Below, one piece after another: positions 15,064-48,618 of a stretch of 64,000 nt of DNA (the first letter of the stretch is position 1; each line of letters starts with the position of its first letter). The stretch is from NCBI RefSeq assembly GCF_020745735.1, contig NC_083417.1:63178001-63242000 (forward strand), written 5' to 3'. The notes beneath the pieces were generated by a model. That model did not search any database. It saw only the letters and a program-made list of their open reading frames with translations, and was not told where the DNA came from. Source of the DNA: Hemiscyllium ocellatum. Taxonomy: Eukaryota. Both the position numbers and the translations under genes were made by a program.

Positions 15064-16660
15064 AAGAGAGTTAAAAGCTAGCAGAACTAATTGACACAGC
15101 ACCAAATGTTCTGAATAAGGTAACAATGTAACACTTGGTCGAAGTTTCCACTTTTGTAACCCCAAATGGGCGATATAAGTTTAAAGTGATGCCGTTTGGA
15201 ATTAAGAACGCACCCGCCACATTCCAAAGACTCATGAACAGTGTTGTGGCTGGATTAACAAACTGTGCAGTATATTTGGATGATATAGTGATCTTTAGTA
15301 AGTCCTGGAAAGATCACATGGTACAATTGGCAGAGCTCTTTGAATGACTACAAGAAGCAATACTGGTGATAAACGTAAATAAAACTGAATTCGTGAAAGC
15401 AGAGGTGACTTAACATTGGTCATGGGAGGTTGATCCCACAGAGCGCAAATACAAAGTCCATCGAGGACTTTTCACAACCAACCTCAAAGAAAGAGGTGCT
15501 TTGATTCTTAGGTCTCAGTAGGTTCTATTGCAAGTTTGTTTCAAACTTAATAATGTAGTGGCAATATTAACCGATTTGCTGAAAAGAGCACAAAGTTTTG
15601 GTGGACAGAGCAACACCAGGAGGCATTTGACCATTTGAAATTAATATTAACCACCACCAGTTTTAGATACACCAAACTTTTCAAAACCTTTTACATTTGC
15701 TATCAATGCTAGTGACATTGGAGTTGGAGCTGTATTCCTACAGGAAGATGAGGATAGGATTGAACTGCCAGTTGGTTATTTTTCAAAGAAGATCAACATC
15801 CACCAAAGGAAATACTCCACGATCGAAAAGGAACTATTGAGTTTGATACTGGCCTTATGACATTTTAATGTGTATGTCATGAACATGTGTCGGAGACAGT
15901 GGTGTACATGGACCACAATCCTCTTACATTCTTAGAATGCTTTAAAGACAAGAATATGAAACTATTTCATTGGAGTCTTATGTTACAGACTTTTAATTTT
16001 AAAATGCTACATATTGCGAGTCGTAAGAATGTAATTACAGACGTGTTATTTCGGAATTAACTGATAAAGTTGAGATGAGATTTGTATTTATTTAATATTA
16101 TATACATGCAGTTAAATAGGAAGAAGGTGAACTTTAATTAAAGTTATCAATGTTTTAAGGTAATGTGTGTAAAAAAAGCAAATTAATGAAGAGAGTTAAA
16201 AGCTAGCAGAGCTACCTGACACAGCACAAAGTGTACTGAATAGGGTAGCAATGTAACACTTGGTTGAAAGCTAGATTAGCTGGTTTGCCTGGAGACAGCA
16301 AAAACAAATTCAAATTCAGCCGATCAATTTAAATTATACCCCAAAAACACCAAAATCCAATCAAATTTGTGTTTTGTATATTGACAATCTTAGGTCAGAT
16401 GCTTTGGGGTATAAGAGTGGGATAACTTGAATAGTTGAGGGAGAACTGGGGTTGAAATGAGTTGAGTTTATCGGCTGTTACGGGAATTGGAACAACTCCT
16501 TGGTCAATTTGCGGTATCAGTTTGGTTAGGTTTTCAAATAGTTGTTGTTCTAAATTCTGTTTTCTTTTGTTCGTGTTTCAATTGTAGTGTTTAAATAAAT
16601 TCTGTTTTGACCAGCTAAATCACTCCTGGAATATCCACTTTACTTCTGCCTTTAAATTAA
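15064..16660 (+). mobile_element. Gypsy/Ty3 LTR retrotransposon remnant (RT-RNase H followed by an LTR-like segment)
   Basis: YKFKVMPFGIKNAPATFQRLM, YLDDIVIFS, DASDIGVGAVFLQ, YSTIEKELLSL; 76-bp direct repeat at 15064-15139 and 16189-16264. Confidence 0.85.
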
Positions 16661-16719
16661 GAACAAGTTAGCATCTAGACTATCTTCTTCAAGTATTTTA
16701 TGGGGTCTGCCTGGTCCAT

Positions 16720-18820
16720 GACAATAGTAACCCCTGGATGTTGACAGTGAGTCTTTCAATGATGGCATTGCCAATAAAGGTGCGCGGTGGTAGTGTAATG
16801 CACCAACCGCTACACTGCTGAAGCCAGGTGCCAACGGAAAGACACCTCTTTCTACTGCCCCCTCAACCATGACCTCACTCCCTCATCACCAAACCATCAC
16901 CCAGACCATATACAACCTCATTACCTCAGGAGATCTCTCACCAACAGCTTACAACCTCATAGTTCAGAAACCCGGCACTGCCTATTTCTATCTCATTCCC
17001 AAGATCCACAAGCTGAACTATCCACCATCTCAGCCTGCTCCTGCCCCGCCGAACTCATCTCCACCTACCTCAATATTGTCCTATTCCCCTGGTCAAGCAG
17101 CTCCCCATATACATTCAGGACACCACCCAGGCCCTCCACCTCCTCTAAGACTTCTGTTTCCCTGGCCCCAATGCCTCATCTTCACCATGGACATCCAGTT
17201 CCTCTATACCTTTATCCACCTTGACCAGAGCCGCCAAGCCCTCTGTTTCTTCCTCTTCCAACTTCCCCACCAGTAACCTTCCACAGACACTCTCATTCGT
17301 TTGGCTGAACTGGTCCTCACCCTCAACAATTTCTCTTTTGAATATTCCCACTTCCTCTAGACTAAAGGGGTAGCCATGGGCACCTACAAGGACCGCAGCC
17401 TGTCTCTTTGTTGACTATGTGGAACACTCCATCATCTGTAGTTACACCGACACCACTCCCCACCTCTTCCTCCGCTACATTGATGACTGCATTGGTGCCA
17501 CCTTGTGCTCCCACAAAGAGGGAGCACATTCTACCTCAACCTTAAATTCACCTGGACCATCTCTGACACCTCCCTCCCCTTCCTGTAACTCTCTATCTCT
17601 ATAATTAATGACTGACTCAACACTGCCATTTTTTACAAACACACTGACTCGCACAGCTACCTGGATTTCACCTCCTCCCACCCTACCTCCTGCAAAATTC
17701 TATCCCAATTCCTCCGACATATTGGTTCCCAGGAGAACCAGTTCCACCACAGAACACACCAGAAGGCCTCCTTCTTTAAAGACCATAATTTTCCCACCCG
17801 CGTGGTTGAAATTGCACTCCCATGCATCTCATTCACGTCCTGCATCTCTGGCCTCAAACCCCACACCTCTAACCGCAACAAGGACAGAACCCCCCCCTCC
17901 CCCGGTCCTCACCTTCCATGCCACCAACCTCCGCATAAATCATCATCCGCTGACATTTCCGTCACCTACAAATGGATCCCACGACCAGGGATATATTCCC
18001 CTCCCCACCCCTATCCACTTTCCACAAAGTCCCTTCCCTCCTTCACTACCTGGTCAGGTTCACACCCCCCAACAATTCACCTCCCCTCCTGGCATCTACC
18101 CCTGCCACCATAGGGATTGCAATACTTGTGCCAGCACCTCCATCCTCACCTTCATACAAGTCCCCAAAAGAGCCTTCCATGTCCATCAAAGTTTCACCTG
18201 CCCTTCCACAAATGTCATTTCTTGCATCTGTTCCTCCTGATGCAGTGTGCTCTACATTGGGGAGACCGGACACCTTCTCACAGAGCGCTTCAGCGAACAT
18301 CTCTGGGACACCCATACCATCAAACCTCACAACCCTGTGGGCTGAAGATTTCAACTCCCCCTCCCACTCTGCCAAGGGCATGCAGGTCCTGGGCCTCCTC
18401 CACCGCCACTCCATCACCACCTGCCTGGAGGAAGAAAGCCTCATCTTCCATCTCAAAACCATTCAACCAACGGGGCATCAATGTGGACTTCACAAGTTTC
18501 CTTATTTCCCCTTCCTCCACCTTACCCCAGTTCCAAACTTCCTGTTTAGCACCGTCCTCCTGGCCTGAACCACCTGTCAATCTTTCTTCCTACCTATCCA
18601 CTCCACTCTCTCCTCTGACCTACCACCTTTACCCCTTCCTCCATTCACCTATTGCACTCTCAACTACCTTCACGCCAGCCCCCTCCCATTTAAGTCTCCA
18701 CTCCTAAGGCTTCTAGCCTCATTCCTGATGAAGGACACCTGCCTGAAACATTGAATTTCCTGCTCCTCGGATGCTGCCTGACCTCGGATGCTGGCTGTGC
18801 TTTTCCAGCGCCACTCTAAT
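16720..18820 (+). mobile_element. Penelope-like element, decayed second copy
   Basis: FLRYIDDCIGA RT motif; GIY-YIG region (18240-18300); terminal CTGATGA...GAAAC at about 18725-18749; colinear with the 6.3-8.5 kb copy. Confidence 0.85.
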
Positions 18821-19499: not shown

Positions 19500-22400
19500 G
19501 GTAATCCAAGATGGAGGACAGGAAAAATTTCTGGCTGTAAGAGCAGTCCTTTTTTTGAGATATTTTAGGTGCTGGAGGTGATTTCCTCGAATTCCAGGAG
19601 CAGCAATTACTGTTTTATATGCTGTTGCATTGTTTTGGAACTTTGGAAAAAATAGTCAAAACACCAGCAATTTTAAAAGGGAGAAGAACAGACAAAGGAA
19701 GCACATGGTGAGGTCAGTGCAGGAGGGAGAGAAAGCGAGAGAGAGAGAACCTGCACAGTTACTGCCTTTGCTGTTTTGAAATTCATTTTTTGCTGGACAT
19801 CGGAGTGCATCTGGGAAAATTAACAACTAATCTTGGAGGAACATGTTTGGGTGAAGTTCACAACACAGAATCAGATAAGTTAATTGTTGTTTTAAATCTG
19901 TCCAAGAGAAAGGCTGTATTAGCGAGTACTGTGGGTTCTTTCTTGATTTTTTTTTGGAAATTAATCTCTTGATTAAACTTAAAATATAAGCCACAGCTAT
20001 TAATTTAACCTGGTGCAGTGTTTTGTAGAGGAATAAGACAATGTTATTTTCTGGGTCTGTAGATTGTGAAGGAGCAAAAATGGCCTTTGCAGTGAGATGT
20101 ATTTCCTGTCAGATGTGGGAGTTTAAAGAGAGTTTAAGAGTTACTGCGGATTATATCTGCAATAAATGCTGTTGGATGCAAATTTTATCAGATCGAATGG
20201 ATCGGTTGGAGAGACAGATAGAAGCGATGAGGAATTTGCAACAGCAACAGTATGTGATGGATGACAGTTGGAGGAAGGGGGGAAAGTCTCAGATACAGTC
20301 ACATAGATGGGTTAACTCCAGGAAGGGTAAGAGAGGTCGGCACCTAGGGGCAGGAGTCTTTTGTGGATATACCCATTTCAACCAGGTATGCTGTTTTGGA
20401 AAATGTAGGTGGTGATGGATTCTCTGGGGAACATAGCACGAACAGCCACGTTTCTAGTATTGAGACTGGCTCTAATGCAACGAGGGGTATGTCGGCTTCC
20501 AAGAGATAAAAAATGAGGTCTGCAGATGCTGGAGATCACAGCTGCAAATGTGTTGCTGGTCAAAGCACAGCAGGTTAGGCAGCATCTCAGGAATAGAGAA
20601 TTCGACGTTTCGAGCATAAGCCCTTCATCAGGAAAGAGATCAATTGTGTTAGGGGATTCTGTAGTCAGAGGTACAGTCAGACGTTTCTGTGGCCAGCAGA
20701 GAAAAACCAGAATGATGTGTTGTTTCCCTGGTGCCAGGAACAAGGGTGTCTCAGAGAGGGTGCAGAATGTTTTCACGGGGGAGACAGGACAGCAGGAGGT
20801 CATTGTCCACATTGGAACTAATGATGTAGGAAGGGAAAAGATTGAGATTCTGAAGGGAGATTACAGAGAGTTAGGCAGAAATTTAAAAAAGGAGGTCCTC
20901 AAGGGTAGTAATATCTGGATTACTCGCAGTGCTACGTGCTAGTGAGGGCAGGAATAGGAGGATACAGCAGATGAATGCACGGCTGAGGAGCTGGTGTGTG
21001 GGAGAAGGATTCACATTTTTGGATCATTGAAAGCTGTTTTGGGGTAGAAGTGACGTGTAAAGGAAGGACGGATTGCAATCTAAATTGAAGGGGACTAATA
21101 CACTGCAGGGAAATTTACTAGAACTGCTTGGGAGGATTTAAACTAGTAAGGTGGGTGATTGGAACCCAGGGAGATAGTGAGGAAAGAGATCAATCTGAAA
21201 CTAGTACAGTTGAGAACAGAAGTGAGTCAAACAGTCAGGGCAGGCAAGGACAAGGTAGGACTAATAAATTAAACTGCATTTATTTCAATGCAAGGTGCCT
21301 AACACGGAAGGCTGATGAACTCAAGGCATGTTTAGCAACATGGCACTGTGATATCATAGCAATTATGGAAACACGGCTCAGGGATGGGTAGGACTGGCAA
21401 CTTAATTTTCCAGGATGCAAATGCTACAGGAAGGACAGAAAGGGAGGCAAGAGTGGAGGGTGAATGGCATTTTTGATAAGGGATAGCATTATAGTTGTCC
21501 TGAGGGAGGATATTCCTGGAAATACATCTAGGGAAGTTATGTGGGTGGAACTGAGAAATAAGAAAGGGATGATCATCTTATTGGGATGGTATTATAGACC
21601 CACTAATAGTCAGAGGGAAATTGAGAAAGAAACTTGTAAGGAGATGTCAACTATCTGTAAGAATAATAAGGTAGTTATGGTAGGGGATTTTAACATTCCA
21701 AACATCGACTGAGACTGCCATAGTGTTAAAGGTTTAGATGGAGCGGAATTTCTTATGTGTGTCCAAGAAAATTTTCTGATTGAGTATGTGGATGTACCTA
21801 CTAGAGAAGGTGCAAAACTTGACCTACTCTTGGGAAATAAGGCAGGGCAGGTGACTGAGGTGTCAGTGGGGGAGCACTTTGGGGCCAGCGACCATAATTC
21901 TATTAGTTTTAAAATAGTGATGGAAAAGGATAGACCAGATCTAAAAGCTGAAGTCCTAAATTGGAGAAAGGCCAATTTTGACGTTATTAGGCAAGAACTT
22001 TCGAAAGCTGATTGGAGGCAGATGTTCACAGGTGAAGGGATGGCTGGAAAATGGGAAGCCTTCAGAAATGAGATAACAAGAATCCAGAGAAAATATATTC
22101 CTGTCAGGGTGAAAGGGAAGGCTGGTAAGTATAGGGAATGCTGGATGACTAAAGAAATTGAGGGTTTAGTTGGAAAAAGAAGGAAGCATATGTAAGGTCT
22201 AGACAGGATAGATCGAGTGAAACATTAAAAGAGTATAAAGGAAGTAGAAGCATACTTAAGAGGGAAATCAGGAGGGCAAAAAGGGGACATGAGGTAGCTA
22301 TGGCAAATAGAATTAAGGAGATCTAAAGGGTTTTTGCAAATATTTTAAGTACAAGAGGGTAACTAGGGAGAGAATAGGGCCACTCAAAGATCAGGAAGAC

Positions 22401-24140
22401 GGCCTTTGTGTGGAGCCACAGAAAATGGGGAGATACTAAATGAATATTTTGCATCAGTATTTACTGTGGAAAATGATATGGAAGGTATAAACTGTGGGGA
22501 AATAGATGGTGACATCTTGCAAAATGTTCAGATTACAGAGGAGGAAGTGCTGGATGTCTTGAAAAGGTGGATAAATCCCCAGGACCTGATCAGGTGTACC
22601 CAAGAACTCTGTGGGAAGCTAGAGAAGTGATTGCTGGGCCTCTTGCTGAGATATTTGTATCATCAATAGTCACAGGTTAGGTGCAAGAAGACTGGAGGTT
22701 GGCAAACATGGTGCCACTGTTTAAGAAGGGTGGTAAAGACAAGCCAGGGAACTATAGACCTGTGAGCCTGACCTTGGTCGTGGGCAAGTTGTTGGAGGGA
22801 ATCCTGAGAAACAGGATGTATATTTGGAAAGGCAAGGACTGATGAGCTTTTTTGAAGAAGTACCAAAGAAGATTGAGGGCAGAGCAGGAGATGTGATCTT
22901 TATGGACTTCAGTAAGGCATTCAACAAAGTTTCCCATGGGAGATTGATTAGCAAGGTTAGATCTCATGAAATACAGGGAGAACTAGCCATTTGGGTACAG
23001 AACTGGCTCAAAGGTAGAAGACAGAGGGTGGTGGAGGGTTGTTTTCCAGACTGGAGGTCTGTGACCAGCAGAGAGTACCACAAGGATTGGTGCTGGGTCC
23101 TTTACTCTTTGTCATTTACATAAATGATTTGGATGCGAGCATAAGAGGTACAATTACTAAGTTTGCAGGTGACACTGAAATTGGAGGTATAGTGGACAGC
23201 GAAGAGGGTTACCTCAGATTACAACAGAATCTGCACCAGACGGGCCAATGGGGTGGCAAGTGGCACATGGAATTTAATTCAGATAAATGTGAGATGCTAC
23301 ACTTTGGGAAAGCAAATCTTAGCACGACTTGTACACTTAATGGTAAGGTCCTAAGGGAGTGTTGTTGAACAAAGAGACCTTCGAGTGCAGGTTCATAACT
23401 CCTTGAAAGTGGAGTCACAGGTAGATAGGATAGTGAAGAAGGTGTTTGGTATGCTTTCCTTTATTTGTCAGAGTACTGAGTACAGGAATTGGGAGGTCAT
23501 GTTGCGGCTGTACAGGACACCAGTTAGGCCACTGTTGGAACATTGCATGCAATTCTGGTCCCTTTCCTATCGGAAAGATGTTGTGAAATTTGAAAAGTTT
23601 CTTAAGAGGGAAATCAGGAGGGCAAAAAGAGGACATGAGATAGCTAAGGCAAATAGAATTAAGGATATCCAAAAGGTTTTTATCCGAAGGGTTCAGAAAA
23701 GATTTACAAGGATGTTGCCAGGGTTGGAGGATTTGAGCTATAGGGAGAAGCTGAACAGGCTGGGGCTGTTTTCCCTGGAGTGTCAAAGGCTGAGGGGTGA
23801 CCTTATAGAGGTTTACAAACTTATAAGGGACATGGATAGGATAAATAGACAAAGTATTTTCCCTGGGGTCGAGGAGTCCAGAACTAGAGGGCATCGGTTT
23901 AGAGTAAGAGGGGAAAGATATAAGGGAGACCTAAGGGGCAAATTTTTCATACAGAGGTTGGTATGCATATAGAATGAGCTGCCAGAGGATGTGGTGGAGG
24001 CTGGTACAATTGCAACATTTGGATGGGTATATGAATAGGAAGGGTTTGGAGGTGCTGGCAGGTGGGACTAGATTGGGTTGGGATATCTGGTTGGACCGAA
24101 GGGTCTGTTTCCATACTGTACATTTCTATGACTCTATGAC
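19500..24140 (+). mobile_element. Near full-length CR1-clade LINE (HER1-like): ORF1 with Cys-finger + SGNH esterase, ORF2 APE + RT; many stops and frameshifts
   Basis: CISCQMWE..CNKC; SIVLGDSVVRG, CCFPGAR, HIGTND; APE motifs MVGDFN and LDLLLGN, ASDHN; RT DFSKAFNKVSH and QGLVLGPLLFVIYIND; short (ACTCTATG) tail at about 24127-24139. Confidence 0.93.
20508..20633 (-). mobile_element. 126-bp PLE-terminus mini-element with hammerhead ribozyme core, inserted in CR1 ORF1; 7-bp TSD AAGAGAT
   Basis: TSD at 20501-20507 and 20634-20640; the empty site ttccaagagatcaac is seen in the second LINE copy (about 36675-36690, minus); core CTGATGA-AGGGCTTATGCTC-GAAAC-GTC. Confidence 0.85.
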
Positions 24141-25559
24141 TTATCTGGGCAATTTTACACATTGCTTGTCAGATGTCAGTGGTGTAGCTGCATTGGAACA
24201 GATTGGGTGGGACAAATCTGGTCTGGATTGGAATTCTTTAGTTTGCTCCTGGCTGTCAGTATCCAATGCCATCATTTGTTTATTGATATCACATGGATGG
24301 GACAATATTAATTGATGATTGGAATCTATGATGCTGCAGAATTAAGGATGAATGAGTGATGTATCTTACACGTGTCTGATGGAAAATGGATAAAAACGAA
24401 TCTGACTTGTCTTTTGCACTGATATTGAATAAATGGCCTCCATCAAATTCTCAATTTACACTTGAAATCCCCCCTTTCCTCCTATGAGAAGTTCTGATAT
24501 TAGGATAATTCTTTCATAGACTGATGATAAATGTGGCGTAATGAGATTCATATATGTCATGTAAGAGAGAAGACATCACTCTAGAATAAGTTTTGAATAG
24601 AAAGTCTTACACAGCAACCTGGAGAGCTGTATTTGAGTACCCACACTTTACAGATATAGCACTGAGCACTGAAGGTAAAAATTAGCATTTTACCCTCCCT
24701 TCGCATCATGCAAGGCTTAGTTATAGTGCTCCAGATCATTATTCCGTAATTAAACACAATAAATGAAAGTAATAGATGCACATTTTATGGAATATGATTT
24801 GATATCCTGTCTTCCATCCATAAATAATTCACTATTTCAGGCTGCTTTTCTGAATTATCATCTCTCCTTCCTTGTCAGTTTTGCATCTACACATGCTACA
24901 CATTTGCCTTGCGATATAAGTTTTGTGTCTTTGTTTGGAATCAGCAAACTTCATGTAGCATAAGCCATTTTGTCATCTCCTCTTTGTTTTGTCTGTGAAA
25001 ATAAAGCTTAATATCACTTGCTGGTCCATTGTCACATACTGTTGGAGATAATTGAGGTTGTAAATAAATGTTGTTATGAAATTTCCTCTCATCAGTTTCC
25101 AATTTGACAGTGTTTCGTAAACCTATGATGTCTACAACAAGAGCAATAGAGTCCTTGAGATGTCACCATGTCTATATTGATTTAGAATTATACACTATCT
25201 CTTCACCATTGCTGTTCAAAGTAATCAGTCCCTTGCCTAATAGTTTATGGGCATACCAACTCCACGTGGACTGCAGTTAGTAAAGAAGGCAGCTCACCAT
25301 CACCTTCTGAATTAGGATGGGCAAGAAGCATTGATCTTGTTAGTGCTACCTTTTTACCATCCATGAATAAATGAAAACAGCTTTAAATAATAACAATCTG
25401 GAGACACTAAAGATAACATATGGCCTATCAAGTTAAAATACTTTTCTTGAGCCAACTCAGCCCCTTACTTTATCACTGCAGCTTTGCTGGTTTATTTTGA
25501 ACAAGTATCCATCAATTTCCCATTTAAAATCATTGATAGTTTCTAACAATTGATTGAAC

Positions 25560-33850: not shown

Positions 33851-34569
33851 GTGTTTGTGCTATGTGACCTCACCTACACTTTATGTGTAGAGGTAGGGGC
33901 CAGACAGTTTTCTTGTTTAGGGTAAGATACTGGAAGTTGGACTACTATGAATGAAATACCAGGAAGGCTTTGCATTCTTTTGAGCTGTGGAATACAATGA
34001 TGTGTATCAAAGCAGGGAGGGGAGAATTCAAGGTTGCATGTCAGCCAGAGACAGTTTGCTGTGAATACTGATACAACATATTTATTCAAATCCTCTGCCA
34101 TTTCCTGGTCCCTTATTATTCTTTCCACAGGCCTTATTTCCTAAGGGACCTATACTATCTTTGCCTTCTCTCTTTTTTAATTTTTAAAGAAGCTCTCGCT
34201 GTCCATCTTTTTTGTTAGTTATGTTTCAGAGGATTTTAATTAAGTCTGGAACGATGACCCTTTGCTGTAGGTTGACACGTTAACTCATGTCTGTTCATTG
34301 AAACATTAACGTTTTGTTTCAGGCATCGCAGGGGTCGACTACTTATGACTGACGGTAAAAAAATTATTTAATTCAGACAATGGTAAATGTTTGAACTTCT
34401 CCAACCTTTAAGACTCACAGCTGACTAATGCTCACACAGTAATCTATAGCGCTCTGGATGCAAATGGCTCAAGGGATATTGATATATTGCAGCAACATGG
34501 TAGTGAGGTAGCTGTCAGACATGAAATAAATGAATGACAAATTGGGCTTCGCAAGTTTGATGGACAACT

Positions 34570-37500
34570 CCTATCCATTGTAACAATGTCCTTTAGTGCT
34601 TGGTATGACTTCAAGCCTGAATAGCTTTCCACAAGTTCTATTGACTTCAGTGTTAGTATTTGGAAATATAGAATGTAACACCTCGCCTGTGACTATTGAT
34701 GATACAAATATCTCAGCAAGGGGCCAAACAATCTCTTTCCTAGCTTCCCACAGAGTTCTAGGGTACTCCTGGGGATTTATCGACTGCCAAGAAATCCAGT
34801 ACTTCCTCCTCTGTAATATGAACAATTTTCAAGATGTCACCATCTATCTCCTTACATTATATAACGTCCATGTCCTTTTCCACAGTCAACACTGATGAAA
34901 AATGCTCATTTAGTATCTCCCTCATCTCCTGCGTCTCCACATAAAGTCCTCCTTGCTGATCTTTGAGGGGTCTGTTCTTTCCCTAGTTACCTTTTTGTCC
35001 TTAATATATTTGTAAAAACCCTTTGTATTCTCCTTAACTCTATTTGCCCTCCTGACTTCCCTCTTAACAATACACTTATTGCCTTTATACTCTTCGAAGG
35101 ATTTAGTCAATCTACCTTGTCTATACCTGTCATATGATTCATTCTTTTTCTGAACGAAACCTTCATTTGCTTTAGTTATCCAGAATTCCCTACACCTACC
35201 AACCTTTCGTTTCACCCTAACAGGAATATACTGTCTCTGGACTTTCACTGTCTAATTTCTGAGGGCTTCCCATTTTCCAGCCATCCCTTTATCTGTGAAC
35301 ATCTGCCCTCAGTCAGCTTTTGAAAGTTCTTGCCCAATACCATCAAAATTACCCTATCTCCAATTTAGAATTTCAAATTTTACATCTGGCCTACCCTTTT
35401 CTATCACTATTTTAAAACTGATATTGTTATGGTCACTGGCCCCAAAGTACTCTCTCACTGACACCTCAGTCACCTGCCCTGGCTTATTTCCCAAGAGGAG
35501 GTCAAGTTTTGCACTTTCTTTAGTAGGTACATCCACATATTGAATGAGAAACTTTTCTTCTACTCACTTAAAAAAAAATCCTCTCCATCTAAACCCTTAA
35601 CACTATGGCAGTTCCAGTCTATGTTTGGAAAGTTAAAATCCCCTACCATAATAACCCTAATATTCTTATAGATAACTGAAATCTCCTTACAAATTTGTTT
35701 CTCAATTTCCCTCTGACTATGTCAGGGGCCTATAATACAATCCCAATAAGGAGATTATCCTTTTCTTATTTCTCAGTCCCAGCCAAATAACTTCCCTGGA
35801 TATATTTCCGGGAATATCCTCCCTCAGTACATCTGTAATGCTATCCCTTACCGAAAACGCCACTCCCCCAACTCTCTTGCTTCCTTTTCTGTCCTTACTG
35901 TAACATTTGTATCTTGGAACATTAAGCTGCCAGCCCTGTCAATCCCTGAGCCACGATTTGCTAATTGCTTTGATATCTCAGTCCTATGTTCCTAACCATG
36001 CCCTGAGTTCATTTTGCCTTCCCTGTAAGGCCTCTTGCATTGAAATCAATGCAATTTAGTTTATCAGACCTACCTTGTTCTCTGCTTTGTCCCTACCTGC
36101 CCTAACAGTTGGACTCGCTTCCTTTCTCAACTGTACCAGTCTCTGATTAATCTGTTTCCTTACTGTCCCCCTGGACACCATCCATCCCTCACCTTAATAT
36201 TTTAAATTTTCCTGAGCAGCTCTAGCAAATCTCCCTGTCAGGATATTAGTCCCCTTCCAATTCAGTTACAAGGTCACTTCTACCCCAGAAGAGGTTGAAT
36301 GGTCCAAAAATGTGAAGTCTACTCCCAAACACCAGCCCTCAGCCATACATTATTCTGCTCTGCCCTCCTATTCCAACTGTCACTACCTCGCAGCACCAGG
36401 AATAATCCAGATATTACTACTCTTAAGGCTCTTCTTTTTAAATTCCTGCTTCATACTTTATATTCTCCTTTCAGAATGTCATCCTTTTCCCTTCCTATGT
36501 CATTGTTTTCAATGTGTCCAATGACCTCCTGCTGGTCCTTCTGCCTTCTGCACTCTGCACTCTCTCTGAGGCATTCTTGATCCTGGTACCAGGGAGGCAA
36601 CACTCCATTCTGATTTTTCGTTGCTGGCCACAGAAACTTGTGTCTGTGCCTCGGACTAGAGAGTCCCCTAACACAGTTGATCTCTTGGAAACTGACGTAC
36701 TACTCATTTCTTTAGAGCCAGTCTCGATACCAGAAACCTGGCTGTCCATGCTACAATTCCCCTGAGAATCAATCACCCTCCACATTTTCCAAAACAGCGT
36801 ACTTGTTTGAAATGGGCATAGCTACAGAACACTTGTGCACTATCTGCTTAACTCTATCACCATTCCTGGAGTTAACCCATCTATGTGACTGTATCTGCAA
36901 ATTTTCTCCCTTGCTATAACTGCCATCCATCACATCCCAATGAGACCATTCCTCATTGCCTCTAACTGTTTCTCCAACTGATCCATTCGATATGATAGGA
37001 TTCGCAAACAACAGCATTTATTGCAGATATAATCCACAGTAACACGTAAACTCTTCCGAAACTCCCAAATCTGACAAGAAGAGCATATGACTCTATTAAA
37101 GGCCATTTTTGCTTCTTTCAATCTATAGACCCAGAAAATAACAATGTCTCATTCCTTTACAAAACACTGCTCAGGCTAACCTAATACCTATTGTTTATAT
37201 TTTTAAGTTTAATCAAGCGACAAATCTCAATAAAACATATAATCAAGAAAGAAACCACTCTACTCACTACTGCAGACTTAATGGAAGGCTACACGTAACA
37301 TATTGACTTATCTGTTTCTATGCTGTGACCTCTCCCAAACAGGTTCCTCCAAGATTAGTTGTGAATTTCACTCTTTCTTAATTCTTTCTTTCTTTCTTTC
37401 TCTCTCTCTCTCTCTCTCTCCTGCACTGACCTCACCATGTGCTCGCTGCCTTTGTATGTGCCTCTCCCCGTTAAAACTGCTGTTGTTTTGACTTTTATTC

Positions 37501-38769: not shown

Positions 38770-39840
38770 TTTGGATTATATGCAATGCAGCGAGGCATTA
38801 AGGTCACTGGTTGTAACTTTGACATGCCATAACAAGTCAAAATATATGGTACTGGAGGAACAGGTGAGTCGACGCTTCAGAAATAAGCCTTTTATCAGGA
38901 ATGTGGAGATGGTAGGGGGATGAGAGATAAATAGGTGGTGGGGGCTGGGCTGGGGTGAAGTTAGGTAGGATGCAGGTGGGAGGTAATAGTAATAGGTCAG
39001 TGGGAGGGTGGAGCAGAGACATGGGAAGGAAGATAGGCATATAGGACGCATCAAGAGGTTGGGGCCAAATTAGAGTCTTGGATCTGGGATGAGGTGGTGG
39101 GAGGGGAGATTTGGAAGCTGGTGAAATAAATGTTGATGCCATGTCTTTATAAGATTTCGAGGCAGAAGATGAAGTATTCTTCCTCCAGTTGATTGGTGGC
39201 TTTTATTTGGTGGTGGAAACCCAGGTTTTGCATGTGCTAAGAGGACTGTGAGGGAGAGTCGATTTGCGTGGTCACAGGGTGGTAGGGTTGTTTGGTGGGT
39301 ACGGAGCAGAAATGTTCCATGAACTGCTCCATTAGTTGGCATTCTGTTTCCTCAATGGAGAGAAGGCTGCACCAAGAGCAATGGTGAATGTGCAGGAAAA
39401 TCTCCAATGGATTTGAAATTATTCTTTAGGTCCTTGGATGGAGGTGAGGGGGATGGCGTCGATGCAGGTTTTGCACTTCGTGCGGTGGCACAGGAATGTG
39501 CCTGCTGTAGATGGTGGGTTGGTTGGGGGAATGGACCTAACGAGGGAGTCGTGGAGGAGATGGTCCCTGTCGAATGCAGATAGGGCTGAGGAGGGAAATA
39601 TATTTTCCGTGGTGGAATCTGACTGTCGGTGGCGAAACTGTCCGAGGATAATGCGCTGTATCCAGGGATTCGTGGGGCAGGAGGTGAGATCGTGAGTGGG
39701 GGGTGGGGAGTGGGTGGGTTGGGTTCTCTCCTTCCTGTGGTTGGAAGGGTGGGGTTTGGAGGTCAGAATTGTGGGAAGTGGAGAAGACACAATGGAGGGC
39801 ATTGTTGATGAGGGAGAGGAAATTCTGTCTTTGAAATTAA
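38770..39840 (-). mobile_element. Penelope-like element, 3' fragment
   Basis: Minus-strand translation FLHDSLVRS...CHRTKCKTC...SIQGPKE is homologous to the other PLE copies; hammerhead-type terminus near 38870-38900. Confidence 0.75.
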
Positions 39841-42050
39841 AAACCAGAACAAGTGATAGACGTTGACTTATGCTCTTTATTCCTGTTTCCCACCCTCACC
39901 TCTACCACCCACCCATCCTGTCAGGCAAACAGGATTTGTGAGCTTTGAGACTTATGTTCGTTCAAAATCAATCATTCTATCACCGCAGCCATCCATTAAA
40001 ATGACCCATAATATTGTACCTGATCGACATATCACAACCTCACACTTTATTCATACCAAGATGCTGCGTGATAGCACACCAATGTAAATATTGGCCAGAC
40101 TATATATCTTGTTTATAAAGGAAAGTCGACAATATTTTTGGCCAAAAAAATTCTTCAACAAATTTGTTGACTAGCTCTCCCTAAAGTTGTCTAAACTTTG
40201 TAGGAGTTTGAACCTAGGCATGTGACTTGCTCCTGCAGTCTGTTGACTACTTGCTGTTCCCAATCGTTCCTTCGGCTGGAAATAACTTGATTTACAATGC
40301 TGGAACTTTCGGTGTATCTTTGCATTATGTTCTGTTCAACAATAGCACCTCTCAGAAGAAACCTATGCCTACATCTTGCTGGACACAGGGAAATGGCACA
40401 TATTACAGCGTTGCAATGAAAACTGCACAACCCTGAATGGCAGCCAGATGGGCCTCAGCCAGAGTTCATGTTGATAGTATTGGGCTTTGGGATTGGTTCT
40501 AACTGGACATTTCTTTGAGTGGCAAGAACTAAATTATTCTTATGTTTCAGTAGGTTCTTTCTGTCCGTTTTCTCCAACTAAACTCACCACCCGTAATATA
40601 GGTTTGGTTAAAACACATTCCTTGGCGCTCATATTTAGTTTTTATTTTGCTTTTGAATAGAATATGGTATTATCTTTTATTTACAGTGGAATAATGGCTC
40701 AGCCTCAGTTGCATTTTAGCAATGCTTTCGCCATAAAGTGTAGAACTTAGTTGTATCTGTGTGCCTGTTATGTTTGACTGTTGCTGTATTGAAAACGACA
40801 GGCATTAAACGCGAATGACGTAAAAATAACAGTTTTGGGACATGCTGCGCACTTGTGGATTCAATGGAATTCCTCCTGCTTACCTATCCAATGTCTGAGA
40901 AGGTCGTATAGGAGATCATGTTTAGTGAATGGTTGTTTTTCGCTTAGCAGTAACAAGTTCCCTAACGGAGCTTAAATTATATTTTTGAAACAAACTGCGT
41001 GCAAAGTAAATGTTAATATAGAAGCTCACTAACAAGTGCATGTTTCAAAATTAGAAAACTTGTCCTGAACTTAGTTTTCAACCTGCGACAAGTTGGAAAT
41101 GGTTTTGTATACTTTGCTCTGGGCTTTGAAAGCTCCCGTTGTTAGACTGGCTTTGCAATGGACTGGTCAGCAATTCTTCGATGTAGCATTTCCTAGTAGA
41201 TACAGATATTTCAAATAGTTGGTTCTTAATGATTGTCAATGATGATTGCAGCACGTTTTATGATATAAAACCAAATACTACATAGTGCACCCAGTAGTAT
41301 CATCCATTTTCCCAATATATTTAAATTCTTGCTTTCTTTGCCACCTTTATGCCCCCATATAATGTAGAATTGTCTTGCAGTTTGGGTGTTGATGCTTTCT
41401 TGGAACCAGGTATTTGCAGGGTGGCATACATCAGATTGTTATCTTCGCTTCCTTTCTTGGTCTGTGAAAGTAAAATTTAATATCACGCATTATCCCACCA
41501 TTGACTCTTTGATAAATGCAGTCATTTTTTTTAAAATAAAAAGACTTCAGGGGAATTTCCTTTCATCATTTGCCAACTTCAGGTTGTAACAGAGTTTATA
41601 ATTATTTTTAACTGAGTTCTCTCCACTCTGTAGCTCTGCAGTAAAAGTTCCTGTTATTCTGATTTGAACTTCTCATAAAATAAGCTAGAATATCAACATT
41701 GCCCATTAAAGAAAGCACGTTATTACTTCAATTAAAATAGCAAACGAATGAAATGCCGGTGTATTAAATGTGTTTGGAATGCTGATATTGCAAAACATCA
41801 TTTTCGACACCCAATTTCTGAGCCATGACAGCCAATGTGATGTGCTTACCGATTGGATAGGCCTCAAGTTGCAATTTACTACCAGCTTTACCCCCCATTG
41901 TTGCTGATTTACCGAACCCTGGGACCCAGGCGAATATGGTGAGCCTTGGCCGAGATGGTCGGGCCCAGTACAGTATGGGTTAAACCTCTGACCTTTCGAT
42001 TCCTACAGTTTAGCTTAGGGTCAAACGTCATTGAACGTCTTTTAAAAATG

Positions 42051-42170
42051 TTAAAGTTTCACTTGATCATATACGGTAATCTTCTTTGTTTGTCTGGGAT
42101 TCTTATTTGTCTTGGTGCTGGATTCGACAGGGTAGGCATAAGGAAGTTTGTTCTGAGTTCCGTACTTTGT
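42051..42170 (-). pseudogene. Exon 7, terminal tail exon TKYGTQNKLPYAYPVESSTKTNKNPRQTKKITVYDQVKL* with ITSM TVYDQV
   Basis: Acceptor gattttacag; 40 codons ending in TAA; TxYxxV consensus; the Y-Y spacing of 23 matches exon 6. Confidence 0.55.
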
Positions 42171-42809
42171 CTGTAAAATCGCTATTTGCCACTCTTACCA
42201 GTTCAGTTGCTATCATTATTACTGCTAGTTCATAAAAGGAAACAAGGATAATTTTCATTGTATTCTCACGCAAAACTCACAGTAAGACCTAGCTGTCCAT
42301 TTGATATCTCCCCTGATTTCCATTTCCGACAAAATCGGCAAAACAGACGTCGACATCAGTTTAATTTTGTCTTTTTTGTCATAGCATAGCATGCAAACAA
42401 GGAATAAGAGCAAGGCACTAGGCCCTTCAATCCAGCTCTATCATTCAACAATGTCATGGCCCACTCTGTCAACGTTCCATTCAGATTCCCCTCGATAATC
42501 TTTCATCCGCTCTATCACCGACAATTTATGTACCCCGCCGTAACACATTTAACGTTTCTGCATTTAGTGCCATTTGAAGAAGGGGTTTTCAAAGACTTAC
42601 AAACCTACGACTGAAACAAAAAATCCTCACCTCTGTCTTAAATAGACAATCATTTACTTTTAAACTTGGCCTTCTACATTTAGATTCTCCCACAAAAGGA
42701 AAGATCCTTTCAGCATCCACCTTGCCAAATTTGTCAGGATCTTATATATTTCAATTAAGTCACCCCTAACTCTTCTAAACTCCAGAGGTATAGGCCTACC
42801 CAATGGTAT

Positions 42810-44500
42810 ATAGCTTTTGAAAAGGAAGAGAGAAATCAAAATTAACATAGGCCCCGAAGAGAAGGAGGTGGGGAAAAAAATCATGGGGAACCAGGAAATG
42901 GTAGAATACACTAGCAGCTTTCTAAGTTATTAAGTATCCAAGGGCAAAAGGAGGAGTGGAATTAAAGAAAATAACTGTCACTGGAGAGGATGCGTCAGGG
43001 AAACTAATGGGGCATAAGACTAATATGTCCCTTGGACCTGATGCAGTACATTACACAATATCAACGGAAGAAGATACAGTAGTGGATGCGCCAATAGTAA
43101 TCTCCCAGAAATCCTTAGATTCTGAAAGAAAAACTGCCAGAGGAGTAAAACTTTTCAAAACCAACATCTTTATTTAAAAAGCAAGAAGACAAGAAATAGT
43201 TATAAACAGGCTAGTTAGCGAACGCTTAAGTCAATTATAAATGATGCAGAGTATTTCAAAATACATAATATCATCAGAGTCAGCTTGCCTTCATGAAGGG
43301 GTAAGCATGCCTGACGAATTGACTAATTTTTTTTATTGAGGTCAGAAGGAGGGCAGATGAAGCTGAGGCAATAGATGCAATATTTTTGGATTTTCAGGCA
43401 CCTTTGCTAAAGTACCACAAACTAGGTTACTTTATCAGATTAAAAGCCCATGGTGTTGCGGGCAGTACATTAACATAGATAGAGGATTGGCGAAGTAATA
43501 TAAGACTGAGAGTTGGGATAGGGTGGTAGAGCATTTTCAGAATGGAAACCTGGAACTTCTGGTGTGACGCAGGGATTAGTGTTGGGGTCACAAGGTTTCC
43601 AATTATATATATTTATATATATTACATTTGGATGTAGCAAATGCATGTACAATGGCCGAGTTTATGGTTAACATTAAAGTAGGCTGGATGATGAGAAGTA
43701 CACAAAAATCTTTAGAAGGATTTAGCCCGATTATGTGAATGGGCAAAGATTTGGCAGAAGGGATATAATGTGGGAAAATGTGAGATTTATATACTTTGGC
43801 AGAAATTCGTGAATCACAAAAAGCTAGCACCCACTTACAACAGGCAATAGAGAAGGCAAATGGAATGCTGACCTTTATTTCAGTGAGAATAGAATATAAA
43901 AACCAGGGATATTTGCCAAAGCTGTACGAGGCACGAGCTAGATCATAGCTGAAATACTGTGAACAGTTTTCTTACCCTTATCTCAAAAAAAGTATTGGCG
44001 TTGCAGGCAGTCCAGAGAAAGTTCACTGAGCTGGTATCAGATCAGAAGGAAGTCTCATGAGACAGGTTAAGATGGCTTGGTCTGTACTCATTGGAATTTA
44101 GAGGAATGAGAGGTGACTTGACTGAGACACATAATATTCTTAGGACAATTAACGAGGTGGATGTGAAGAGTTTGTTTCCCCATGTGAGAATCTAGGACCA
44201 GAGGGAATATTCTCAGAATAAGTGATTGCACCTTTAAAATAGAAGAAGGAATTTCTTCTGTCAGAGTTTAGGGAATCTGTGAAAGTATTTATAACAAATG
44301 TTTGGATTATTAAAGTTTGGTTATTAAAAACATTCAAACTATTCATTTACTGACTAAAACTATATTTTAGGCTTGAATGTAGATTTTTAGTCTGTAAAGA
44401 AATAAAATGTGAAAAGGAAAAGGCAGGGTTATGGAATAGAGGTTTGTAAGATCAATTTTCAATTCCTTGGATGGTGGAGCAGACTGGATGATCTAAATGG
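42810..44500 (+). mobile_element. Decayed CR1 ORF2 fragment
   Basis: QLAFMKG.ACLTN, DAIFLDFQ, gtgacgcagggattagtgttgggg (QGxVLG), and a 3' tail. Confidence 0.75.
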
Positions 44501-45124
44501 CTTAGCTCTCTTTTGTTATTTCATTCATAATTAGTGGACATCACTGGGTAGGCCAGCATTCATTCTCCACCCCTAACTGTGCCAGAGGGAAGTTGAGAGT
44601 CAACTACATTGATGTGACTCTGGATTGACAAGTAAGGCAAATCAGGTCAAGATGGCAGATTTCCTTCCCTGAAGATCGTGTCTTATGGTCATGAGATCAC
44701 ATAAGGGAATCTGCTCATTTCCGGTATTAGTCTAGTAAACCTTGCCTGAACTACTTTCAATGTCCTTCCACCAAAAGGGTGACCATTATTGTACGCAGTG
44801 ATACAGAATTGCTCTTATCAATCCCTTGCATTCATGAAATAGGGAGCTGTTCTTCTGATAAGAAGTCACGACAGTTTGCATGATCAACGTTTACTGAAAT
44901 TAGCTTTGCATTCCAGTTTTTTCGATTGAATTAATTTCCATTAGCTGCCCTAGTGAGATTTAAACCGATGTCTCCCATACTATTAACCTTGGAAACTGGA
45001 TATCTGCCGGTTGTTCTGTTTTATCAAGTCAAAAATACAGCACCCCCTTCCCTTACTTTTTTTAAACGACTCCATTATCGCAATGACGAAGTGAAAGTGA
45101 GGACTGTTGATGCAGGAGGTTGAT

Positions 45125-45425
45125 GGGCGGCACGGTGGCACAGTGGTTAGCACTGCTGCCTCACAGCGCCAGAGACCTGGATTCAATTGCCGCCTCAGGT
45201 GACTGACTGTGTGGAGTTTGCACGTTCTCCCCGTGTCTGCGTGGGTTTACTCCGGGAGCTCCGGTTTCCTCCCACAGACCAAAGATGTGCGGGTCAGATG
45301 AATTGGCTATGCTAAATTGCTCCTAGTGTTATGTAAGGGTATGGGTGGGTTGCGCTTCGGCTGGTCGGTGTGGATTTGTTGGGCCGAAGGGCCTGTTTCC
45401 ACACTGTAAGTAATCTAATCAAAAA
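45125..45425 (+). mobile_element. HE1-type tRNA-derived SINE (V-SINE-like), full length
   Basis: GGGCGGCACGGTGGCACAGTGGTTAGCACTGCTGCCTCACAGCGCC head with A/B-box-like motifs, TTGCACGTTCTCCCCGTGTCTGCGTGGG core, CTGTAAGTAATCTAATC tail. Confidence 0.9.
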
Positions 45426-45616
45426 CTGTGGCGGTGAAAAAGCACAGCAGGTCAACCAGCATTGGAGGCTCAGGAGTGAAGATGTTTGCCGAAACGTCGA
45501 CTCTCCTGCTCCTGCTGCGTGACATGCTGTGTTTTTTCAGAACCAAACTTTTCGACTCCATTATGACAATGTTGATGTTGTATGGGAGTGACGTGGATAT
45601 TTTTTTCTTGACAATT

Positions 45617-45727
45617 CTTGGAATAGACAGTATTTTCTTCCGCGCGTCTGTGTTTGGAGAATCCTTTGTTGGCTTTCAATTTTACTGCAGCAGAGGCGGC
45701 ATTTTCTTCAAATGGTGCTTTTCTAAG
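45617..45727 (-). pseudogene. Exon 6, decayed ITIM/ITSM module LRKAPFEENAASAAVKLKANKGFSKHRRAEENTVYSK
   Basis: Acceptor cttattttctag, phase 0; TVY motif with an S-A-A-V (YxxV-like) site 23 residues upstream; no GT at the expected in-frame end, so the frame runs on to TGA at 45470-45472. Confidence 0.5.
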
Positions 45728-46853
45728 CTAGAAAATAAGATATGAGATATAGATAGAAGCGCATTTGATTTTACAGCCAGCCATCGCCAACTGGAACTGA
45801 ACAATAGAATATTAACGTGCACAAAGTAGTTAATCAAACAAGCTAGAAATTGCATTCTGTCAACTCTCAATGATTTGCATCGAATATCTCACCAATGTGG
45901 TGGGGAGGAATGTTCTAAATATGAAACCCAGAGCATTTAAGGCATTTACCTACAATTTTACATACAGCTGATAAAAATAGACATTCATTAATTCCTTGTT
46001 TATCTCTAGCTCGCTTCAACCTTGTTGTGGCTTCGGCAGTTTCCTTATTCCATAATTAAGCCAATCAATTAGAAGATCAGATAGTGAAGCCTTTGGCTGT
46101 TCTCCTAATACTTCTGGAATCTTGCATCCTCTGACTGGCAACCAACAATTAGATTTCTGGCAAAAATTCTCCCCAAACACGTCTACAGCCATTATTTCCT
46201 CTCCCTCAGAAAGTACGAAACAGCCTGCTAACTGCTAACAAAGGAATATAATGCAGAAAGACCTGAGATTTTATGTACCACACTACTTTAGGAAGATGTC
46301 GTGGTTTGGAGAGGATATAATAGAGATTTACTAGAAGGGTCCTAGCGTTCAGGGATTTCAATGATGTTTAGAAGCTTGGACATGATGTTTTACTTAGATT
46401 AGTTACGTTTAAGGGGAGATTTAACTTAAATGTCTAACATGTTGAGAAATTGTGATGGAATAAATTAGGATAAACTATTTTCATTGGCCGGATGTTTGAG
46501 ATTTAGGGGACAAGATTCGTTTTCATTGGTAAATAATCTGGGGAGTATGTTTGTTCTGCAGCCCAGTGAGCGCCCGCAAACTGACAGAGTGACAGGAAAA
46601 ATTCGATAGGAACTTTCAAAAAGGGAACTGGATTGACACGAAAAATGTAATAAGCAGGAAAATAGCACGAGACCGGAACAAATTGATTAATTGCCTCATA
46701 GATGCAGTAGAGTTGTTAACTCTTCATCCTGGGCAATGTTATTCTCTGTTCTGTGAAATCTAAGTAATTTCGACTGAATGCAAAACTCATTGCTCTCCTT
46801 TCCACGCACCCACCTCCTATTTGTTTGGAATGTAATGAATATTATCTCCTTAC

Positions 46854-46897
46854 CGGTTAGCCATTTTGATTTTCTTCCACCGAATGTCTCCCTCTGC
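46854..46897 (-). CDS. Exon 5, short cytoplasmic exon (G)RGRHSVEENQNG*P containing an in-frame TAA
   Basis: Acceptor ttactttgctttctattag; donor CCG|gtaagg; 44 nt, phase 1-0 when joined to exon 4; TAA is the penultimate codon. Confidence 0.55.
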
Positions 46898-47499: not shown

Positions 47500-47604
47500 C
47501 AGCTGATACTTTCAATTTGAGTGTCAAGAAAATGCTTATGATTAGTACCATCGCCAATGCCCCTCCTGCACCTCCAATAATCATCAGACGATTGAAACCT
47601 TCAC
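47500..47604 (-). CDS. Exon 4, transmembrane: GEGFNRLMIIGGAGGALAMVLIISIFLTLKLKVSA
   Basis: Acceptor ttgattctgtag; donor GCTG|gtaaga; 105 nt, phase 1-1; 23-residue hydrophobic stretch followed by KLK. Confidence 0.85.
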
Positions 47605-48321: not shown

Positions 48322-48618
48322 CTCGATTAAAGGTGTAGCTGACGCTGGTGGGCACCTTAAGACAAGCATGAGATACCAGACAGGTATAAACTACACCACT
48401 CTGCACAGGCTGAGCATCTTCCAATGAACTAGTAACCTCATAAAGCCCGTCCACGGTCTTGTTTTTCACAGTCTCTATTCCGGTAAGAATTTTCAAACCA
48501 TTTCTTAACCAAGAGATTCCTAATTCCTCTGGGAAAAATGCAGTCGTTTTGCATTCGAATTTCAAATAGTTCTCTGAAATCCCTCCTACGGGAACGATTT
48601 TCTGGAGTTTTGGAGGAA
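48322..48618 (-). CDS. Exon 3, C1-set Ig domain: VPPKLQKIVPVGGISENYLKFECKTTAFFPEELGISWLRNG...DGLYEVTSSL...YTCLVSHACLKVPTSVSYTFNR
   Basis: Acceptor ttttctgttatag; donor CGAG|gtaaga; 297 nt, phase 1-1; C1 hallmarks CxxxxFFP, WLRNG, DGLY and YxCxVxH (Ig/MHC signature). Confidence 0.92.

Follow-up and report, generated by a model that had tools for sequence, protein, structure and literature searches.

Within a 64,000-nt stretch of the Hemiscyllium ocellatum genome (NCBI RefSeq assembly GCF_020745735.1, contig NC_083417.1, positions 63,178,001 to 63,242,000 of the forward strand; hereafter the window), there is an eight-exon gene on the minus strand (51830-41321) for a V-C1 membrane receptor, and this gene no longer encodes its tyrosine-motif cytoplasmic tail. 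An in-frame TAA interrupts exon 5, the splice donor of exon 6 is lost, and no enumerated splice path leads back to a tyrosine motif. On balance, and at a confidence only a little better than even, we read this as the recent loss of a tail, probably neutral, within a receptor family that evolves by birth and death, the copy being a young pseudogene or a null or altered allele and not the bearer of a selected new function. The segment under study, 42051-46897, is the 3′ half of the gene. A preliminary description of it had proposed that a four-tyrosine inhibitory tail was switched off by three lesions next to an intact ectodomain, giving a decoy or paired receptor; the lesions in the assembly and the switched-off tail hold, while the module count, one residue change taken as a recent lesion, a terminal exon 6 and an activating pairing do not.

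Exon structure and tail lesions

Six-frame scans and tblastn searches with proteins of the family delineate a leader, V, C1, transmembrane (TM) and four tail exons (Table 1). The frames of exons 1-4 are open and their splice sites canonical (ag/gt throughout exons 1-5), and the leader, V and C1 exons are joined in phase 1. Exon 2 keeps both Cys residues, the Trp and a J-like ..SGSLLTV end, and Pfam recovers both the V-set and the C1-set domain, in agreement with the intact ectodomain of the preliminary description. Exon 5 turns phase 1 into phase 0, and exons 6, 7 and 8 are phase-0 units. A plus-strand reading of 42051-42130 as a TM exon was dropped, since all homology, like the V, C1 and TM exons, lies on the minus strand.

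Table 1. Exons and tail lesions of the receptor gene (positions in the window; a slash within letters marks a splice junction)
Feature	Position	Strand	Remarks
Exon 1, leader (MLVRAAVLFMALLRMAWP)	51776..51830	-	ATG at 51830; donor CAG/gtactc, phase 1; tblastn to leaders of P0009, P0002
Exon 2, VJ-type V-set domain	51261..51569	-	Pfam V-set 4.3e-12; frame open
Exon 3, C1-set domain	48322..48618	-	Pfam C1-set 5e-9; frame open; canonical ag/gt
Exon 4, stalk, uncharged TM (LMIIGGAGGALAMVLIISIFLTL) and KLKVSA	47500..47604	-	tblastn to TM of P0011, P0018, P0003
Exon 5, 44 nt, phase 1 to 0, RGRHSVEENQNG-stop-P	46854..46897	-	frame set by homology to P0003, P0006
In-frame TAA, penultimate codon of exon 5	46857..46859	-	3 nt before donor
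Exon 6, tail module 1 (..AASAAV..23..TVY)	45617..45727	-	tblastn 1.5e-15 to P0006
Lost exon 6 donor site, aattgtcaag	45607..45616	-	paralogue has gtaaga
Exon 7, tail module 2 (TKY, LPYAYP..23..TVYDQ)	42063..42170	-	open frame; weak donor CAA/gtgaaa
Exon 8, terminal module, LMYATL and TLYGGI, then stop	41321..41461	-	tblastn 4e-19 to P0006, 8e-8 to P0011

Two loci serve as close references. The nearest database protein is P0006 of C. plagiosum, with 102 of 103 V-domain residues, 35 of 37 exon 6 residues and 40 of 46 exon 8 residues identical, and on these identities it is taken as the orthologue; no Hemiscyllium protein is found among the matches of the protein database searches. The second reference is the locus L001 of C. 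punctatum (BEZZ01000124.1, 457050-478767), which is collinear with the window gene at 70-77% DNA identity including introns, shares the boundaries of exons 5, 6 and 8, and has these three tail exons intact. Two C. punctatum loci were considered as orthologue and rejected, an identity of about 70-77% marking them as paralogues.

Both references have peculiarities of their own. The P0006 model is without a signal peptide and without a TM segment and contains two near-identical C1 domains, to which exon 3 is 86-88% identical; the model looks mis-built or locally duplicated. Its odd N-terminal exon (MDRLDDELQYCELKRYFQN..) is matched at 52103-52174 on the minus strand of the window, where the match contains a stop, and the true leader in the window is the exon 1 of Table 1. 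In L001, the leader donor and the TM acceptor look altered, exon 7 is decayed (indels and a TAG), and the annotation consists of merely a 124-residue hypothetical protein.

The stop codon is codon 269 in a conceptual frame of 389 codons (388 codons and the terminal stop). The TM exon ends in phase 1 (GCT G/gtaaga), and therefore exon 5 (ttag/GC AGA ... GGC TAA CCG/gtaagg) reads G-RGRHSVEENQNG-stop-P. The homologous peptides, DNNRNSVEAAQREEP in catshark P0003, GRGRNSVEANQNVQP in P0006 and GKGRSSMEAGQNDER in L001, fix the same frame, and therefore the TAA is in frame and 3 nt from the donor, as the preliminary description had it. The orthologue has Gln at this position, while Glu is found in the paralogue, the catshark and Heterodontus.

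The second lesion lies at the end of exon 6, which reads AAG/aattgt. The orthologous protein runs ..TVYSQ/TKK.. across this junction, implying an intact donor, and the nearest GT in the window gene is weak, out of frame and located 4 nt further on (T/gtcaag), consistent with the lack of a GT at the in-frame junction noted before. A 12-nt deletion possibly underlies the loss, but the alignment to the paralogue is ambiguous at this point. The preliminary description had suggested a comparison with an intact-tail paralogue, and in L001 the two sites read GAG at the stop position and CAG/gtaaga at the exon 6 donor. Judged from these homologues, both lesions are lineage-specific and postdate the split from the C. 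plagiosum orthologue.

The change that had been counted as a third lesion is older. Exon 6 has a Ser (TCT, 45694-45692) at its first site, 23 residues before the TVY tyrosine, and Tyr stands at the equivalent place of exon 7. The Ser also stands in the orthologue of C. plagiosum (AASAAV) and in the paralogue of C. punctatum (TSATV), whereas Tyr is kept in Heterodontus, Mobula and Hypanus (TAYATL, LAYATL, TAYASL), and the same Tyr has been lost independently in other family members. The site was thus already Ser in the hemiscylliid ancestor.

Furthermore, the tail does not end at exon 7. Exon 7 ends CAA/gtgaaa where Heterodontus proteins run on (..TVYAQ/TKQRSGENQLTYAAL..), and 600 nt beyond it, outside the range of the preliminary description, there is an exon 8 with a good acceptor and an open frame that is conserved among relatives. 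Exon 8 holds the only canonical motifs of the tail, an immunoreceptor tyrosine-based inhibitory motif (ITIM), LMYATL (41434-41417), and an immunoreceptor tyrosine-based switch motif (ITSM), TLYGGI (41365-41348), 23 residues apart, and AATAAA signals lie 639 and 674 nt downstream of its stop. With exon 7 not terminal and the exon 8 module conserved, the ancestral tail therefore consists of three tandem modules. The parallel construction of exons 6 and 7, with 23 residues from the first site to the TVY tyrosine, is as first described, while the SIRP-alpha-like tail of two ITIM and ITSM pairs gives way to a tail whose third module carries the sole canonical pair. Elsewhere, exon 7 is a cassette exon in Heterodontus and is absent from the P0006 model.

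Splice paths and the predicted product

Counting three states of exon 5 (normal acceptor, the alternative gcag acceptor in tandem, skipping), three of exon 6 (normal, cryptic donor at +4, skipping) and two of exon 7 (present or absent), 18 paths lead to exon 8. A tyrosine-motif tail is restored in none of them, ruling out the gcag acceptor and exon skipping as routes around the stop and verifying that the coding capacity for the tail is lost, also when exon 5 skipping and other phases are taken into account. It is therefore extremely improbable that transcripts bypass the stop, by exon 5 skipping, another acceptor or unrecognised exons, and make a full ITIM tail. A tandem acceptor (ttag gcag) does exist at exon 5, and the tail exons are phase-0 cassettes that are alternatively spliced in relatives (P0007, P0008, P0011), but a 44-nt exon that leads from phase 1 to phase 0 throws all downstream exons out of frame when it is skipped or shortened, and 18 of 18 paths end without the motif.

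With normal use of exon 5, the predicted product is a 268-residue V-C1 protein with the TM segment LMIIGGAGGALAMVLIISIFLTL and a 19-residue tail, KLKVSAGRGRHSVEENQNG, that contains no tyrosine, close to the tail of about 20 residues proposed earlier. The tail has no tyrosine, and therefore recruitment of SH2-domain phosphatases is not expected; the TM segment has zero charged residues, and therefore coupling to an adaptor with an ITAM (immunoreceptor tyrosine-based activation motif) is not expected either. We infer that the product would be neither inhibitory nor ITAM-coupled activating, and thus signalling-dead. In addition, the window contains no homologue of the Arg-type TM exon present in the relatives P0002, P0004, P0012 and P0022. 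Together with the uncharged TM segment, this leaves no place for a paired receptor in the activating sense.

The fate of the mRNA would depend on which junction is the last one. A stop codon near the last junction escapes nonsense-mediated decay (NMD) under the 50-55 nt rule, and only in transcripts whose final junction is that of exon 5 would the TAA thus do no harm. The preliminary description had supposed that exon 6 has become terminal and that the mRNA escapes NMD on this account. However, AATAAA and ATTAAA are absent for about 1.7 kb after exon 6, and the acceptors of exons 7 and 8 are intact, so that exon 6 is rejected as a new terminal exon. Direct splicing of exon 5 to exon 8, which is the pattern of the Heterodontus isoform P0008, would likewise let the transcript escape, whereas transcripts keeping exon 6 or 7 have a junction more than 100 nt downstream of the stop and should be NMD-sensitive. 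The supposed escape thus stands for transcripts whose last junction is that of exon 5, and fails for the paths that keep exon 6 or 7.

Probable neutral tail loss and the rival explanations

Differences from the orthologue were polarised with six or seven outgroups. On the lineage of the window gene, 6-7 of 202 residues of V and C1 and 8-10 of 98 residues of exons 5, 6 and 8 are derived, compared with 4 of 202 and 2 of 98 (both about 2%) on the C. plagiosum lineage. The excess in the tail fits a tail freed from constraint next to an ectodomain still constrained, though the counts are too low to lend it weight. Measured against the paralogue of C. punctatum, the ratio of nonsynonymous to synonymous substitution rates (dN/dS) is 0.23 for V and C1 and 0.71 for the tail, values that are averaged over the whole paralogue divergence and silent on the time since the stop. 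That both lesions fall in the tail is not evidence by itself, the tail being about 35% of the coding target.

In the reading that we favour, a Gln codon became TAA at the penultimate codon of exon 5 after the split from C. plagiosum, and the exon 6 donor was lost in the same lineage. The locus can thus encode only the 268-residue membrane-anchored V-C1 protein, which would be signalling-dead, and would most probably drift neutrally towards pseudogene status. Two independent tail lesions would be permitted by neutral decay once a first hit had occurred. Turnover of the family is visible as well, in a dead terminal exon of another copy at about 24990-24861 and in the decayed exon 7 of the C. punctatum paralogue. 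Several observations weigh against this reading. The four upstream exons carry no lesion and have canonical splice sites, and the stop sits where NMD can be escaped. The derived changes are denser in the tail than in V and C1 (small counts, roughly p = 0.02-0.1), predicted proteins of catshark, Mobula and Hemitrygon share the layout of the tail-less product, which thereby mimics a normal form of the family, and the TAA is known from one assembly only.

A functional tail-less receptor under selection, of the SIRP-gamma type or a decoy, which would bind the ligand of the family without signalling and compete with inhibitory paralogues or take part in adhesion, is in our judgement possible but unlikely. 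The intact leader, V, C1 and TM exons with their splice sites, the dN/dS contrast between ectodomain and tail and the tail bias of derived changes would suit it, as would a stop 3 nt from the junction, a position at which NMD would spare transcripts that join exon 5 to exon 8 or terminate after exon 5. The neutral TM segment and short tail of P0003, P0032, P0033 and, nearly, P0031 point the same way, P0003 being probably short by structure. On the other hand, the dN/dS values reflect all of the divergence between the paralogues and not the period after the stop arose, the substitution counts do not reach significance, paths keeping exon 6 or 7 would be NMD targets, and nonsense lesions in expanded immunoreceptor families are for the most part neutral. 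The sequencing runs that contain the locus are DNA-like and come from one study, and none is recorded as RNA; two small runs guessed to be RNA contain 0-2% of the words of the locus, a weak and uninformative figure. In its strongest form, a fixed, NMD-escaping nonsense codon would have made an inhibitory V-C1 receptor into a stable, signalling-dead membrane decoy, mimicking by mutation the short form of catshark and rays; we regard this as doubtful.

It is also rather improbable that the TAA stems from an error in assembly or base calling, or from an allele that is private to the sequenced animal or heterozygous in it, in a species that normally has an intact inhibitory receptor. The codon is a single C-to-T difference from the Gln codon of the orthologue in one assembly, and with the TAA removed, an exon 5-8 or 5-7-8 transcript would give an ITIM tail. 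However, the TAA lies outside any homopolymer, the same copy carries a second independent lesion at the exon 6 donor, and restoring the codon would still leave exon 6 without in-frame splicing.

The rest of the window, the family and known receptor systems

Outside the receptor gene, most of the window is occupied by long open frames that resemble remnants of LINEs or retrotransposons (about 5600-8400, 16600-18700, 20000-24300, 34500-37100 and 38800-39900), reverse-transcriptase-like or low-complexity and Pro/Ser-rich, several of which match repeats of the C. punctatum loci at 70-80% identity. Within the gene, positions 45202-45248 of intron 6 belong to a repeat. The relic at 24861-24990, on the minus strand, consists of a terminal exon of the family with the acceptor ttttcacag, followed by TKQRGDDKMAYAT-stop-SLLIPNKDTKL..; it has an in-frame TGA, and its second Tyr is replaced. 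Because no V, C1 or TM exon lies nearby, it is all that is left of a dead neighbouring copy. At 53305-53454, also on the minus strand, there is a weak V-domain-like match (E 0.06-0.18: ..SRQSFSPVYGDSS..YCTSTQHVKTQQLLGFHEGKQLT), which could be either a chance match or what decay has left of a further copy's V exon.

By its sequence features, the gene can be assigned to a cartilaginous-fish 'SIRP-like' family with a leader, a VJ-type V domain, one C1 domain, a TM segment and a modular tyrosine-motif tail. We retrieved 37 relatives from sharks, rays and one chimaera, and the identity of the window gene to family proteins is 60-98%. Their RefSeq names are inconsistent ('tyrosine-protein phosphatase non-receptor type substrate 1-like', 'natural cytotoxicity triggering receptor 3 ligand 1-like', 'tapasin-related protein-like'), and the 'SIRP-like' names come from automatic annotation. 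The window gene has the leader, the VJ-type V-set exon and the single C1-set exon joined in phase 1, the uncharged TM exon, the 44-nt juxtamembrane exon leading from phase 1 to 0 and the phase-0 tail modules. An open frame through a terminal exon with LxYAxL ... xLYAxV/I is lacking, exon 8 being intact but unreachable in frame. The locus thus belongs to the family by descent and not by product. Viewed as a candidate unitary pseudogene, it has two disabling lesions, both in the tail, and none in exons 1-4, with substitution counts too low to tell a neutral from a constrained ectodomain.

The relatives with a classifiable C-terminal part fall into three main classes. Long tyrosine-motif tails are present in P0007, P0008, P0011, P0015, P0018, P0021 and P0028-P0030. 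A TM segment with Arg and an ..IVDH.. motif, followed by a short tail, is present in P0002, P0004, P0012, P0022 and P0034, which are probable activating partners; the Arg or Lys that would mark such a partner is absent from the uncharged TM segment of the window gene. The third class combines an uncharged TM segment with a short tail that lacks ITIM and ITSM and terminates with the exon 5 peptide or shortly beyond it (P0003, P0031, P0032 and P0033). Specifically, the predicted proteins P0003 (catshark, 271 aa), P0032 (Mobula) and P0033 (Hemitrygon) have tyrosine-free tails that stop just past the exon 5 equivalent, while the tail of P0031 (Mobula) is slightly longer and keeps one Tyr outside any motif. 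An unrelated gene lies only 2.4 kb downstream of the P0003 gene, and therefore this copy is probably short-tailed by structure. The tail-less form thus counts as an ordinary variant of the family, which lowers the novelty of the finding, yet makes a working truncated receptor plausible. In Scyliorhinus canicula, the ectodomains of P0002, P0003 and P0004 are 69-83% identical to one another and continue into one of two C-terminal parts, an Arg-bearing TM segment with a short tail or a neutral TM segment with a tyrosine-free tail; these proteins form a paired-receptor pattern inside the family, and we found no paper on such a pattern.

Should the short product be expressed, the V-C1 family of cartilaginous fish would possess the three arms of a paired-receptor system, namely an ITIM tail, a charged TM segment and a tail-less form. 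Paired-receptor logic would then be as old as the base of the jawed vertebrates, and the locus could serve as a naturally occurring 'tail-off' variant in the search for ligands. If the product acts as a decoy, tail-less competitors of inhibitory receptors would have arisen repeatedly in the oldest jawed vertebrates. If it is not expressed, the locus adds one to the decaying copies of an immune gene cluster under birth and death, and the chief use of the analysis is a correction of the annotation, with eight exons and the canonical ITIM in exon 8.

Our literature search found no paper on a cartilaginous-fish V-C1-TM-ITIM family. The UrIg and UrIg2 papers treat different, non-rearranging VJ-C1 genes (PMC12227049, PMC10751288). 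The long-tailed relatives (C. plagiosum P0006, Heterodontus P0011 and P0018, Hypanus P0021) share with the window gene the exon plan, phases, VJ-type V domain, single C1 domain and TM type, the exon 5 juxtamembrane peptide and the tail modules with their 23-residue Tyr-to-Tyr spacing. They have up to six tail tyrosines, whereas this copy has the exon 5 stop and no exon 6 donor. The short-tailed relatives (Scyliorhinus P0003, Mobula P0031 and P0032, Hemitrygon P0033) share the V-C1 layout with a neutral TM segment and a tail of about 20 residues. However, their models run beyond exon 5 into the intron and end there, through alternative termination or loss of downstream exons, whereas in this copy a nonsense codon ends the tail and exons 6-8 are still present downstream with open frames.

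In the human SIRP family, SIRP-alpha is inhibitory, SIRP-beta activates through DAP12, and SIRP-gamma has only a few tail residues and is not known to signal. Like the fish family, the human one joins similar ectodomains to an ITIM tail, a charged TM segment or neither, and the spacing of the paired tail tyrosines resembles that of SIRP-alpha. The truncated product, with an intact ectodomain, a neutral TM segment and a short tyrosine-free tail, would by analogy be of the SIRP-gamma type. The gene differs from SIRP-alpha proper (PTPNS1) in that one C1 exon, not two, lies between V and TM. In a search of solved chains in the PDB, UrIg2, IgM, B7-H6 and SIRP-alpha are nearest to its C1 domain, which is thus no closer to SIRP-alpha than to the other three. 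In the mammalian KIR, LILR and Siglec clusters, there are tail-truncating alleles and pseudogenes whose ITIM tails have been lost to nonsense or splice lesions and whose Ig exons remain open. The birth-and-death pattern is the same, in a different gene family and lineage, and the tail loss described here, of a kind well known from the SIRP, KIR and LILR families, is commonplace in such families.

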